A stretch of DNA of 64,000 nt from Octopus sinensis (Eukaryota). Each line of letters starts with the position of its first letter. Positions within the stretch are counted from its first letter, which is position 1. The position numbers and the translations under genes are program-made. Of this stretch, positions 15,482-56,496 are shown piece after piece. The notes under the pieces are model-generated. The model saw nothing but the letters and a program-made list of their open reading frames with translations. It was not told the origin of the DNA and ran no database searches. The stretch spans positions 58,528,001 through 58,592,000 of the forward strand of contig NC_043006.1 of the NCBI RefSeq assembly GCF_006345805.1, given 5' to 3'.

Positions 15482-16102
15482 ATGAATAAGAATTTTGATA
15501 GTGACAGACAAAAACCTCTTGACTACAAAAAAAGTTATATAGCTCGGCGTTGGAAAGTATTCCTGATGAGAGAACTTGAAGATGTAAAACAACCAACATT
15601 TTGGCAAGCGGTATTGGCGGAATTTCTTGGAGTCGCTTTACTTGTTTGTTTCGCAGTTGCTTCTGGAATGAGTAATGAGAATTCCCCACCGAATGGATTG
15701 CTTTTTGCTTGTATTTCATCAGGCTTTTTTATTGCAATCATCATCGGAAGCTTGGTCCATATAAGTGGTGCTCACGTTAACCCTGCTGTCAGTTTGGCTT
15801 TCGCGATAATTGGTGACATAAGTTGGATCCGCTTCATATTCTACTCTATGAGTCAAATGCTCGGCTCTATTGCAGGAGCGGCATACATACGTATTATTAC
15901 ACCGTCAAATATGCATGGAAATTTAGGGGTTCTTACTCCTGGTCCGGGTGTTTCCGATTTACAAGCTATGTTAGTGGAAATGCTCATCACATTCTTGCTT
16001 ATCTTTGGAATTTTGGCAGCCGTTGATAAAGGCCGTAAAGACTCTATCGGATCTGTTCCACTACATGTTGGTCTTATAGTCTCAGTGAACTTATTTGCTG
16101 CT
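15482..16102 (+). CDS. AQP: Aquaporin (MIP family, AQP4-like), coding exon 1 (aa 1-207)
   Basis: The ORF contains AEFLG (TM1), HISGAHVNPAVS (first NPA) and VEMLITF (TM4). Homology stops at GCT|GTAAGT, a phase-0 donor at 16103. Confidence 0.95.
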
Positions 16103-16187
16103 GTAAGTATTGCTCTATTACCTCATTTTTAACGCATACATACATATATTTTATACATACATACATACATACATACATACATATATG

Positions 16188-16440
16188 TGGAGGCGCAATG
16201 GCCCAGTGGTTAGGGCAGCGGACTCGCGGTTGTAGGATCGCGGTTTCGATTCCCAGACCGGGCGTTGTGAGTGTTTCTTGGGGATGGGGGCGATCCCTGC
16301 TGTACTCTTTCGCCACAATTTTCTCTCACTCTTTCTTCTGTTGGTCTGCTCGCTTAGCCAGCGGGGTGGCGTCATTTGAAGGCTAAAACAATGCGAAGCG
16401 CATTGTGACAACATCTGATAGCCTGGTTGGTCACGGTCAC
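16188..16440 (+). mobile_element. tRNA-derived SINE family D (GGAGGCGCAATGGCCCAGTGGTTAGG head)
   Basis: A box TGGCCCAGTGG and B box GTTTCGATTCC; related copies at 31805-32120(-), 33500-33708(-), 52863-52978(+) and 59585-59705(-). Confidence 0.8.
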
Positions 16441-17067
16441 ATATATACATACATACATATATACATACGTACATACATGGTGTAGTGGTTGAGGTGTTGC
16501 ACTCACGATTCCGAGATCATTGTTTCGATTCCCAGAAAATTCCAGGATGTTCTCACCGCGCCAAATATGCATTTTTCAAGATTTGACACTGTGAGGAGGA
16601 GGATATGATGATGATGATTCAGGGAGTTCCCCCTCTCCTCTTTTCCACCTCCGCCTAAGTGTCCGTTCATAGCGGAGCATCTCTTTGCATATGGATACTA
16701 TATACATGGATGTGTGTGTGTGTGTGTGTGTGTACATATATACATCTTCACGTATCATGCCTTCAGTTCTTGGTGATAACGGACCTCCACGTGCTCCTGC
16801 CCCACGCGCAAAACTTAACTTTGGTGACGGTCGAAGATCATTTGTGATTCGTGAAGTCTTCTATCAGACAACACTCTCTTCACGGTAGGCTCCATTTCTA
16901 TTGTTACCGATTTTATACAAAACCTGAATATCCATTCTTCGGGAAAGATACAGTAGAGGGAAGTACTCTCGCCCTGTGTATTTGTCAAAAGGTAGATGAT
17001 TGTGGCAAATATGATTAGGGTGAATGAATCTAGTCTATGTTTGTGTCTGTTGATTAGAGAACAATAG

Positions 17068-18054
17068 GGATCTTTTCGGTTTGAACGGCAATTTTTAACA
17101 ATTTCTAGGTAACTAAAAAATTTTAAACTTCGTATACTGGTAGAATGTGTTTATCATCATTTTCTCTTGGCTTTCTTGAGAAAATTCTGTAGTTTGTAAG
17201 ATATTTGTAAGATATTTTCTTCAGTTTCGGCAATTTCAACCAATCAATTACGTCCATTGACGTAAACAACATTCGGTGCCGTATGAATATGTCCCTCGTT
17301 TAAGAAACAGATTGGGTTTATTTACATTTGTGAAAAAAATGATACCTTTCCCCCACCCCTAACCCTAACCCTAACTAACCCTAAATCTAAAATAGATTGA
17401 AATGCAATAGATCGATACTAGGGTCATAATTATGGGTGACAATTTCATATGACACCGCTAGAAAAAAACGGCCGTTGGGCGAAGGCTTGTACCCTTGGTC
17501 ATCAGTGTGACCCTGAATGTGTGGAGTTCCTTGACTGGCCATAGGCGCAGGAGTGGCTGTGTGGTAAATAGCTTGCTTACCATCCACATGGTTCCGGGTT
17601 CAGTCCCATGCGTGGCATCTTGGGCAAGTGTCTTCTTCTAAAGCCTCGGGCCGACCAAAGTCTTGTGAGTGGATTTGGTAGACGTTGTACATATGTATAT
17701 GTATGTGTGTATGTTTGCGTGTCTGTGTTTGTCCCCCTAGGATTGCTTGACAACCGATGCTGGTGTGTTTATGTCCCCGTCACCTAGCTTACAAAGAATA
17801 AGTCCCGGGGTCGATTTGCTCGACTAAAGGCGGTGCTCCAGCATAGCCGCAGTCAAATGACTGAAACAAGTAAAAGAGTAAAAGAGAGGTTTCGGATCTT
17901 TTCATTTTGAAGGCCAGATTTTCCTAGTTAACTAAAAAATTTGAAACTTCGTATACTGGTAGAATGTGTCAAAAGAAAACATTATTGTAAACAAAATTGA
18001 AAATAAAATTGTTATTCGTAACTTAAACGTAGTTTAATTTTTACGAAAAGATCC
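17068..18054. mobile_element. MITE-like element with 11-bp inverted ends and internal (CCCTAA)n, interrupted by a SINE
   Basis: GGATCTTTTCG at 17068 and CGAAAAGATCC at 18044. CCCTAA repeats at 17357-17384. Internal duplication of AACTAAAAAATTT.AAACTTCGTATACTGGTAGAATGTGT. Confidence 0.45.
17544..17885 (+). mobile_element. SINE family A
   Basis: Full head-to-tail match to the other copies. Confidence 0.85.
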
Positions 18055-54975: not shown

Positions 54976-55462
54976 CAATACCTTCAAATATATATCTATA
55001 TATATATATATACATATATCAGAGGGAGATGAAAAATTATCTTGACAGTGGTTAGCAAGAATGCCAGATGCCTTTCAACCTTCTTGGGCCTTGTCAATGA
55101 TGTGTACTTGTATGTATGACTTGTGCTGTGATTTTGTTTAAAGTGAAGAAAAGTTGCATATTGTGAATCTCACTCTTTTATTTGTGACCACCTACAATCC
55201 AGTGACAAGGCCAGATCCAGATGATTAAGGATGAAGATAAATGCAGTAAATGACCACAATGTCATATTTACCTCATCTTCCTCTCTGCACTCCACAGTGC
55301 ATTGTTGCAACCTTCTTCTCCTTTGAACCATGAAGATTTCTTCTACATAGACTCAAAATCCTAAAGACCTTTTCCATTTTTCCTTGGTGTAAACCTATAT
55401 CCTCTTTGTTGTTCTTTCACCTCATCTTTGAGTTTTTTGTTTTGTTTTGTTTTTTCTTGAGC

Positions 55463-55632
55463 CATACATACATACATACATACATACATACATACATACA
55501 TACATACATACATACATACAAACATACATACATACATACATACATACAAACATACATACATACATACATACATACATACATACATACATACATACATACA
55601 TACAAACATACATACATACATACATACATACA
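55463..55632. repeat. (CATA)n microsatellite with CAAA variants
   Basis: Directly visible. Confidence 0.95.
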
Positions 55633-56298
55633 TTACAGATCTAATCCATCACTGGAACAGTAAAAATCTGTAAAACTTTTCAGAAGTTTATCATTTAAAT
55701 ATATATGAGCATGTCTAGATATGCAACTATATGCATGAGAATACATACAAAAAACAAAACATACAAATTTTCACATATACATACATACAAACAAAAATAC
55801 CCTGTTGTTGATGTTAAAATTCCAATGAAGGAGCCTTGAATCTAGGTTAGAAACTGGCTCTTTCTCTATTGGCAAAAAGTCTTGAAATAAAACTGAACAA
55901 TGACATCCATCCAACTATCCATCCATCCATCCATCCATCCATACATACATACATACATACATACATACATATATAGGCAGCTGAATTTAGGTAGGGGAGG
56001 GAGAGTTTTGAAGATGATCCAGGGTCTGCACATCTTGCAACTGTCACAATCAAAGAAAACAGAGCAGAAGAGGAGGAGGAGGAGGAGCAGGGTACATGAT
56101 CTATAAGTTCAACATTAGTTCACCATAATAAATGGTGAACTTATGATGAACTCCTGCTGACCTCTACAATGATACACAACTTTTGTTCTCTGTCCCTCAG
56201 AACAATATCAGGTCTGTGGTGTTTGAAACTGCTTCTTGTTATCGGAACGCATAGTTTATCCATTCATTTTTATTGGTCTTCTTATTATTTCCATACAG

Positions 56299-56496
56299 GC
56301 CTACTGGATTGGTCCACTAACCGGCAGTATCATAGGGTCAGTATTATACGACAAGGTATTCTCAACCAGAAAAACTGACAGCCTTTCCTACCGATGTTGT
56401 CTGAGGAAACGAGACAAGAACGATGCCCCATCTCGAAGCCCTAGTGCAGAAGAAATACCAATGAAAAATGAAATAACTGATGTTGATGCTGCATGA
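56299..56496 (+). CDS. AQP: Aquaporin coding exon 3 (aa 235-299, AYWIGPLTGSIIGSVLYDKVF...DVDAA*)
   Basis: Acceptor ttattatttccatacAG, then YWIGP (TM6). In frame with exon 2; ends TGA TAA. Confidence 0.93.
   Translation, partial: AYWIGPLTGSIIGSVLYDKVFSTRKTDSLSYRCCLRKRDKNDAPSRSPSAEEIPMKNEITDVDAA

Follow-up and report, generated by a model that had tools for sequence, protein, structure and literature searches.

A non-aromatic selectivity filter, shared across molluscs, in an octopus aquaporin of classical type

The 64,000-nucleotide stretch of the Octopus sinensis genome analysed here (contig NC_043006.1, positions 58,528,001 to 58,592,000 of the forward strand; hereafter the window) contains, at 15482-56496, the 3' two-thirds of an intact aquaporin gene that has already been annotated by NCBI. 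The aromatic/arginine (ar/R) selectivity filter of the encoded protein, Ser80-Leu204-Gly213-Arg219, lacks the Phe and the His of the classical filter and, as alignments and a distance tree indicate, is a signature conserved throughout a clade of classical-type aquaporins that spans the molluscs, with the octopus gene as its cephalopod member. A first-pass annotation, made from the sequence alone, had seen here an AQP4-lineage channel with a rebuilt, wide and apolar filter, repurposed for larger neutral solutes such as glycerol. We find that the non-aromatic filter already defines a published class of mollusc aquaporins and does not mark a new kind of channel. On balance, we consider it probable that the gene encodes an intact aquaporin of classical fold from this mollusc clade, which passes water and small neutral solutes through its non-aromatic filter and comes in two first-exon versions.

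Results

The gene and its product

Joining the three coding exons (Table 1) gives 900 nt in frame, with GT/AG at every border. The resulting protein of 299 amino acids is 100% identical to the NCBI entry 'aquaporin-like isoform X2' of Octopus sinensis and matches the Pfam MIP family (PF00230) with an E-value of 4.4e-60 across residues 35-251. TM denotes a transmembrane helix and LE a filter position in loop E throughout.

Table 1. Exons, filter codons and related loci. Positions refer to the window, except in the last two rows, which use the numbering of the locus named.
Feature	Position	Strand	Remarks
Coding exon 1b	15482-16102	+	ATG to donor GCT/gtaagt, 207 codons; N-terminal helix, TM1-TM5, first NPA box (NPA1), S80, L204
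Ser80 codon, TM2 ar/R position (AQP4 Phe77)	15719-15721	+	From translation and alignment
First NPA box, N100-P101-A102	15779-15787	+	From translation
Asn203-Leu204 codons; Leu204 is the TM5 ar/R position (AQP4 His201)	16088-16093	+	From translation and alignment
Intron, 35.3 kb	16103-51371	+	Transposon remnants (SINE, LTR-retroelement reverse transcriptase/RNase H, LINE reverse transcriptase, Tc1-like transposase) and microsatellites
81-bp exon	51372-51452	+	27 amino acids, INITGGAMNPCRAFGPAVITGVWTAHW; loop E/helix HE, G213, N216-P-C218, R219, P2 A220, P3 A224
Second box, N216-P217-C218, then Arg219 (LE2)	51396-51407	+	Reads NPC; in the joined exons the G213 codon starts at 51387, N216 at 51396 and R219 at 51405
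Last coding exon	56299-56496	+	65 codons and TGA; TM6 (AYWIGP; Y236/W237), cytoplasmic tail with Cys268
Candidate polyadenylation signal AATAAA	56596-56601	+	About 100 nt past the stop codon; read from sequence
O. vulgaris locus L001	exon 1a 10001-10669; exon 1b 41369-41989; 81-bp exon 76400-76480; last exon 81307-81504		
Argonauta hians locus L002	exon 1a 10001-10675; exon 1b 23598-24218; 81-bp exon 31727-31807; last exon ~33002-33193		

Fold and placement of the filter residues

A phmmer search against all PDB chains, which was also used for the filter alignment, returned AQP4 and AQP0 as the best matches (E ~1e-49, ~40% identity), followed by AQP2/5/1, TIP2;1 (3e-35), NIP2;1 and PIPs. The aquaglyceroporins GlpF, AQP3 and AQP10 were far weaker (E 1e-10 to 1e-14). 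Froger positions P2-P5 are A220/A224/Y236/W237, as had been read at first pass, and thus follow the classical pattern (S/A, A, Y/F, W). In aquaglyceroporins these positions hold Asp at P2, Lys or Arg at P3, Pro at P4 and a non-aromatic residue at P5. Membership of the aquaglyceroporins was rejected on these E-values, and the protein is of classical type, as first proposed.

The HMMER alignments with AQP4 and AQP0 are free of gaps from TM2 to NPA1 and from TM5 to the second box, and they pair S80, L204, G213 and R219 with F77, H201, A210 and R216 of human AQP4. An AlphaFold model built from a 149-sequence alignment had a mean predicted local distance difference test score (pLDDT) of 89, a predicted template modelling score (pTM) of 0.83 and a pLDDT above 96 in the pore segments; an earlier model from 14 sequences (pLDDT 67.7, weak pore loops) was dropped. 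The model has helices TM1-6 and the half-helices HB (101-109) and HE (217-227). Its top Foldseek match is human AQP4 (3gd8), with a template modelling score of 0.94 and a root-mean-square deviation of 1.3 Å across 220 of 223 residues, and superposition keeps the four residues at the filter positions. Alignment and model therefore confirm S80/L204/G213/R219 as the ar/R filter residues, at exactly the codon positions given in the first-pass annotation.

We also considered a register shift in TM5, whereby a one-residue insertion would place Asn203 at the His position. This was rejected because the alignments are ungapped, because the filter position keeps its spacing of 12 residues from the second Asn, because an intron sits four residues past the filter position, as is kept elsewhere, and because the model fits AQP4 so closely. 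The position of this intron matches that of the vertebrate 81-bp exon. An 81-nt exon with the second NPA box is likewise conserved in oyster classical aquaporins (PMC8925068).

Compared with the classical arrangement of Phe, His, a small residue and Arg, only the Arg is kept. Phe and His are both lost, as had been noted, and Phe, His and Ala/Cys give way to Ser, Leu and Gly. The pore Asn residues are retained at both positions named earlier, N100 and N216, but the second of the two boxes reads NPC and not NPA. The description of the filter as apolar holds for the hydrophobic Leu204 and not for Ser80, which brings a polar hydroxyl.

A mollusc-wide clade with the same filter

A residue table was compiled for about 70 relatives from two database searches, supplemented with local alignments. 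Ordinary classical aquaporins (vertebrate AQP4/2/5/6, Drip, Prip-like sequences, unionid mussel proteins and Lottia 170145) have Phe at TM2, Gly or Cys followed by His in TM5, any residue at LE1 and Arg at LE2. A second set has a small TM2 residue (S/A/T/G/V/C), an invariant Asn followed by an aliphatic residue (L/M/I/V/A) in TM5, then G/A and R. Within it, Octopus, Argonauta and two relatives represented by Logan contigs (P0001-P0003, P0005, P0006) have S at TM2 and L or M at TM5; Haliotis, Lottia, Batillaria, Babylonia, Nucella and Elysia (P0009-P0013, P0015, P0017) have A, S, G or V with I or A, the abalone filters being A/I or A/A. Bradybaena and Candidula (P0126, P0135) carry T with I, the filter of stylommatophoran snails in the table, and other panpulmonates C or A with V, A or I. 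Oysters come in two flavours, A/I (P0014, P0122) and T/V (P0121, P0123-P0125).

Two further positions set the mollusc sequences apart. The Asn just before the TM5 filter position, Asn203 here, is invariant across the mollusc clade, whereas ordinary classical aquaporins have Gly or Cys. Secondly, the clade tolerates different residues at the third position of the second box: NPC in O. sinensis, NPS in Argonauta, NPA in oysters, NPI in one Logan-contig relative and in many gastropods, and NPV in Elysia. This position is Ala in every sequence of the F/H type, a few of which vary the second residue (NTA, NSA).

In a neighbour-joining (NJ) tree (246 trimmed columns, Kimura distances, 100 bootstraps), the octopus protein grouped with oyster, abalone and helicoid-snail sequences of the same filter type, and not with insect sequences. 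The mollusc atypical clade as a whole received 92% bootstrap support, the cephalopods 100% and the four octopod exon-1 variants 96%. A Physella sequence reading F/N-I was placed outside the clade. At the base of the tree the mollusc clade lies outside a cluster of vertebrate AQP0/2/4/5/6, arthropod Drip/Prip-like and mollusc F/H sequences, in a region of deep nodes that the NJ method does not place reliably. The tree would thus make 'classical grade' a safe description, and it does not bear out 'AQP4 lineage', which proved too specific.

Since the filter is common to cephalopod, gastropod and oyster relatives, together with the invariant Asn203, it is old. An innovation specific to octopus was rejected on the clade-wide residue table, and with it the view that the filter had been rebuilt in this gene. 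These comparisons support the filter as a conserved signature of a mollusc-wide clade of classical type, to which the octopus gene belongs as a cephalopod member.

Several side observations concern the same sequences. A plant TIP likewise has Asn-Ile at the spot of Asn203-Leu204, and the role of Asn203 may be either pore-lining or packing. Loop D reads VDKGRKD, in which R185 never varies across the clade and D187 hardly does; the R-x-D pattern occurs in AQP4 as well. A conserved charged loop D with an Arg-x-Asp salt bridge has been described for the lophotrochoaquaporins, a classical clade specific to lophotrochozoans (Calcino et al. 2019). The cytoplasmic tail carries Cys267-Cys268 in the motif YRCCLRK (56398-56403); at least 90% of the aligned mollusc-clade sequences keep Cys268, which may be a lipidation or regulatory site. 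Finally, the aquaporin isoform X1 of Nematostella vectensis (P0044) has an identical S/N-L/G/R filter, and only 14% of bootstrap replicates place it with the clade. Given this value we do not claim a common origin of the Nematostella and mollusc filters, whose likeness may stem from shared descent or from convergence.

Correspondence with published classes

PMC8925068, a secondary source on this point, names the loss of both Phe and His as the trait that sets the malacoaquaporins apart (Kosicka et al. 2016). In the oyster proteins Aqp4L1 and Aqp4L3, Phe/His are replaced by Ala/Ile and Thr/Val, respectively, and the filters were modelled as enlarged (PMC8925068). With S80 and L204 both non-aromatic, the octopus protein would be of the malacoaquaporin or Aqp4L1/Aqp4L3 type by filter composition, which links it indirectly to the members that have been assayed. 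According to the same secondary source, a Pacific abalone orthologue with an enlarged pore passes no glycerol (Jia & Liu 2022), and a Helix pomatia orthologue passes H2O2 and not glycerol. A protein search seeded with a helicoid-snail sequence recovered two paralogues in one panpulmonate snail, which fits the published Maqp duplication.

The octopus protein falls outside two neighbouring classes. Malacoglyceroporins keep the Phe, have only the His replaced and are restricted to euthyneuran gastropods (bioRxiv 10.1101/2022.07.25.501387); here the Phe is lost and the source is a cephalopod. Calcino et al. 2019 doubt that clade and add the lophotrochoaquaporins. Entomoglyceroporins are a hexapod, Prip-derived clade in which an uncharged residue, Ala or Ser in 73% of cases, replaces the TM5 His (Finn et al. 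2015, PMC4518291). The octopus protein also has an uncharged residue there, yet this is Leu and not the Ala, Ser or Val of entomoglyceroporins, and both its source and its clustering are molluscan. A mollusc parallel to the entomoglyceroporins, suggested at first pass as a possibility, has already been put forward for another mollusc group, the Phe-keeping malacoglyceroporins (bioRxiv 10.1101/2022.07.25.501387).

Two alternative first exons

From residue 208 of the window protein on, an O. vulgaris protein of 315 amino acids (P0002) matches it exactly; ahead of that residue the two are about 65% identical. The loci of O. vulgaris and Argonauta hians account for this pattern: each has two alternative exons for TM1-TM5, 1a and 1b, ahead of one 81-bp exon and one last exon (Table 1), and no second set of 3' exons was found at either. 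Within the window there is no second copy of the 81-bp exon, of the last exon or of exon 1a. In O. vulgaris the two first exons are about 31 kb apart, 1a being the upstream one, so that the O. sinensis counterpart of 1a would lie outside the window, about 16 kb upstream of position 1. At the DNA level, then, the gene makes two channel versions, in which exon 1a (isoform X1) or exon 1b (isoform X2) is joined to the same 81-bp and last exons. The two isoforms have the filters S/M/G/R and S/L/G/R, respectively, and differ in their N-terminal tails. The same arrangement, two alternative first exons of one gene, explains a pair of truncated O. bimaculoides models (P0004, P0007), each of which reads through from one of these exons.

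Between O. sinensis and O. vulgaris, 4 of the 621 nt of exon 1b differ (2 synonymous, 2 non-synonymous) and none of the 276 nt of exons 2 and 3, an identity of 99.4-100% for exons against 94-98% for introns and flanks (2-6% divergence). Between O. sinensis and Argonauta hians, exon 1b shows a non-synonymous divergence (dN) of 0.22 and a synonymous divergence (dS) of about 1.7, which is saturated, giving a dN/dS of about 0.13. The open reading frame (ORF), the start codon and the in-phase donor of exon 1b are intact in both O. vulgaris and Argonauta. Sequence comparison therefore indicates that exons 1a and 1b are both conserved in Octopus and Argonauta and under purifying selection. A 2,067-nt Logan contig (ERR12374249) encodes P0005, which groups with cephalopods, as one uninterrupted ORF of 993 nt, which we read as support, at transcript level and from a relative, for exons joined in the same way. 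The contig index held no octopus transcript with exactly the window protein.

A short N-terminus and the derived residues FAC, GSLVH and D[LI]QAM are common to the exon-1b copies of Octopus and Argonauta, which argues that the duplication of exon 1 predates the split between the two. Since the Logan-contig relatives P0005 and P0006 fall outside the octopod exon-1 variants, the duplication probably arose within the octopod lineage. Exons 1a and 1b of Octopus have a dS of 0.54, far under that between Octopus and Argonauta orthologues (about 1.6), and up to 80-86% of their third codon positions agree within alignment codons 31-60 and 181-210. Partial gene conversion may account for this pattern.

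Located at 15466-15481, a tract rich in pyrimidines (…tttcaaatctttag) runs up to an AG 7 nt ahead of the exon-1b ATG. Because of this AG, exon 1b could be preceded by a non-coding 5' exon instead of having a promoter of its own.

Repeats in introns and flanks

At the start of intron 1, between (CATA)n/(ATAC)n microsatellites, lies a tRNA-like stretch (16190-16400), which we take for a remnant of a short interspersed element (SINE) because ARAGORN calls no tRNA genes in the window. Degraded partial SINE copies occur near 31932-32117, 33527-33704, 48470-48508, 52865-52973 and 59649-59707. Fragments of transposon ORFs are scattered over the introns and the 3' flank, at 26672-27223 (+), 30981-31547 (-), 42148-42876 (-), 47027-47518 (+) and 62420-62968 (+). 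They comprise RNase H/integrase of long terminal repeat (LTR) retroelements, reverse transcriptases of long interspersed elements (LINEs) with zf-RVT, and the helix-turn-helix of a Tc1/mariner-like transposase. A unit of about 184 bp (GGTATTTCGTCTG…) forms tandem dimers or trimers at 32945-33312, 36046-36415 and 61073-61556, with 89-92% match within the arrays, and probably represents a dispersed octopus repeat family. Long (TA)n tracts were found at 11639-11854 and 37602-37724, and (CATA)43 at 55463-55633.

Discussion

The results presented above extend a known class of mollusc aquaporins with modest additions: a cephalopod member, an NPC box and dual exons for TM1-TM5. Cephalopods, gastropods and bivalves all show one signature of the non-aromatic-filter class, so the class dates back at least to the earliest molluscs and is strongly constrained. 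The S/L and S/M isoforms of octopus form a handy pair for finding selectivity residues beyond the four ar/R positions.

How might such a filter work? By side-chain volume, the changes from Phe to Ser and from Ala to Gly would strip about 130 Å3 from the outer constriction, and the change from His to Leu adds a little. Any widening thus stems from the first two, Leu being no smaller than His, and the constriction would be wider on the side of TM2 and loop E. Replacing His by Leu would also remove a polar, water-coordinating ring and leave a hydrophobic wall facing Arg219 and the hydroxyl of Ser80. Protons and cations would still be shut out by this Arg together with the two pore Asn. Such an amphipathic filter would let through water and small neutral solutes, and by analogy with related channels H2O2, NH3 and urea are the most likely of these; glycerol would pass poorly or not at all, as has been told of the abalone and Helix orthologues. 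We favour H2O2, NH3 and urea over glycerol because of those orthologue assays, as they are relayed in PMC8925068, because of the bulky Leu where entomoglyceroporins have Ala or Ser, because of the TIP-like dyad of Asn and an aliphatic residue, and because of what Aqp14 of vertebrates does: related to AQP4 and likewise non-aromatic in its filter, it conducts water, urea, NH3 and H2O2, and glycerol to some extent (PMC6906440).

Several points weigh against this interpretation. The adjective 'wide' rests on side-chain volumes, not on a pore profile. Moreover, Leu204 is bulkier than His and Asn203 could reach the pore, so that the constriction may be narrower or more polar than supposed. The functional reports on the abalone and Helix orthologues are second-hand, through the summary in PMC8925068, and a protein search seeded with a helicoid-snail sequence found no protein named Helix pomatia. 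Our literature search found no paper on cephalopod aquaporins and no permeability data for any cephalopod member. Finally, the case for exon 1b being used is built on the NCBI model, on conservation and on there being no other 3' exons.

These points leave room for other explanations. It is unlikely, in our judgement, that the protein is an ordinary or poorly conducting water channel, with selectivity set by Asn203, by the NPC region or by gating through the N-terminal helix or C-terminal tail. Such a channel would agree with the invariant Asn beside the TM5 filter position, with the conserved Arg and both Asn, and with oyster paralogues whose pores differ despite identical filters (PMC8925068). 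However, a non-canonical filter kept clade-wide across Mollusca argues that the filter itself is selected, the Helix orthologue is reported in the summary of PMC8925068 to pass H2O2, and similar filters in Aqp14 and NIP5;1 accompany solute transport. Rather improbable, too, is a cephalopod counterpart of the entomoglyceroporins that transports glycerol (and urea) efficiently by virtue of its lost His and Phe. The idea has precedents, in that AQP4 H201A/S and Prip His-to-Ser mutants gain glycerol and urea transport (PMC4518291), two or more ar/R mutations turn AQP1 into a glycerol transporter (Beitz 2006, as cited in PMC4518291), Aqp14 passes some glycerol, and the octopus protein has lost both aromatic-type filter residues. 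It is countered by the reported glycerol impermeability of the abalone and Helix orthologues, which lack Phe and His as well, by the bulky TM5 Leu, and by the proposed mollusc glycerol transporters, the malacoglyceroporins, which keep Phe and are confined to euthyneuran gastropods; we therefore hold the glycerol channel of the first-pass annotation to be the less likely reading. A channel for metalloids or boric acid with low water permeability, akin to the plant NIP-II group (A-I-G-R, NPS/NPV), seems very improbable. The combinations of S-L-G-R with NPA/NPC here and of A-I-G-R with NPA/NPI in gastropods come close to NIP5;1, a comparison also drawn in PMC8925068, but the convergence is at four residues only, Froger P5 Trp and the overall sequence are those of the animal classical type, and there is no physiological rationale or data for such a role in molluscs.

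A different objection concerns the gene model: exon 1a alone would make the real channel, and exon 1b would be a duplicate in decay or an artefact of annotation. It would explain why the O. vulgaris annotation holds only the exon-1a isoform, why the O. bimaculoides models are truncated read-throughs and why the contig index lacks an octopus transcript for exactly the window protein. We give it very little credence: the ORF of exon 1b, its start codon and its in-phase GT donor are all intact in the three species O. sinensis, O. vulgaris and Argonauta; the exon has a dN/dS of 0.13 (with dS saturated); between the two Octopus species it has diverged several-fold less than the flanking DNA; and NCBI models it as isoform X2. 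Going beyond the small-solute channel of classical fold that we favour, one might picture an ancient, possibly pre-bilaterian lineage of solute channels, to which the S/N-L/G/R filter of Nematostella would belong. The dual exons of octopods, which are ammonotelic, would then provide two pores and two N-terminal regulatory domains on a shared loop E/TM6 module, as tissue-specific conduits for NH3, urea or H2O2, for example in the gill or renal appendages. This we regard as speculative and unlikely as a whole.

Among known systems, the malacoaquaporins and oyster Aqp4L1/Aqp4L3 are closest: they are classical-type mollusc MIPs in which Phe and His both give way to non-aromatic residues, they share the 81-nt exon, and oyster sequences with the exact Aqp4L1 (A/I) and Aqp4L3 (T/V) filters cluster with the octopus protein. 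The latter differs in its Ser/Leu pair, in having NPC for NPA and in its two alternative first exons for TM1-TM5. Human AQP4 (3gd8) and AQP0 are the best matches in sequence and structure, with the same Froger pattern and the same position of the 81-bp exon, whereas AQP4 is water-selective, three of the four filter residues differ from its F77/H201/A210/R216, and the tree does not group the octopus protein with vertebrate AQP4. Aqp14 (Chauvigné et al. 2019, PMC6906440) resembles it as a classical, AQP4-related channel whose constriction has no aromatics and keeps the Arg; it is a vertebrate protein of independent origin, with a five-residue constriction that includes a TM1 Val, and we saw no sign of orthology. 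The entomoglyceroporins are likewise of classical grade and have lost the TM5 His, but they are insect-specific, mostly have Ala or Ser in place of the octopus Leu, and their glycerol transport has been demonstrated. TIP2;1 and AQP8 agree in the aliphatic TM5 residue (Ile) and the Gly/Ala-Arg of loop E, a plant TIP reading …ANIL… where the molluscs read …VN[LMIV]F…; they differ at TM2, where they have His and the mollusc clade Ser, Ala, Thr or Gly, the octopus residue being Ser. Plant NIP5;1 combines a filter of near-identical chemistry, A-I-G-R, with relaxed boxes, NPS/NPV (PMC7724820), and malacoaquaporin-type filters have been likened to those of plant NIPs before (PMC8925068); given its plant lineage and different Froger P5, we treat this likeness as a resemblance only.

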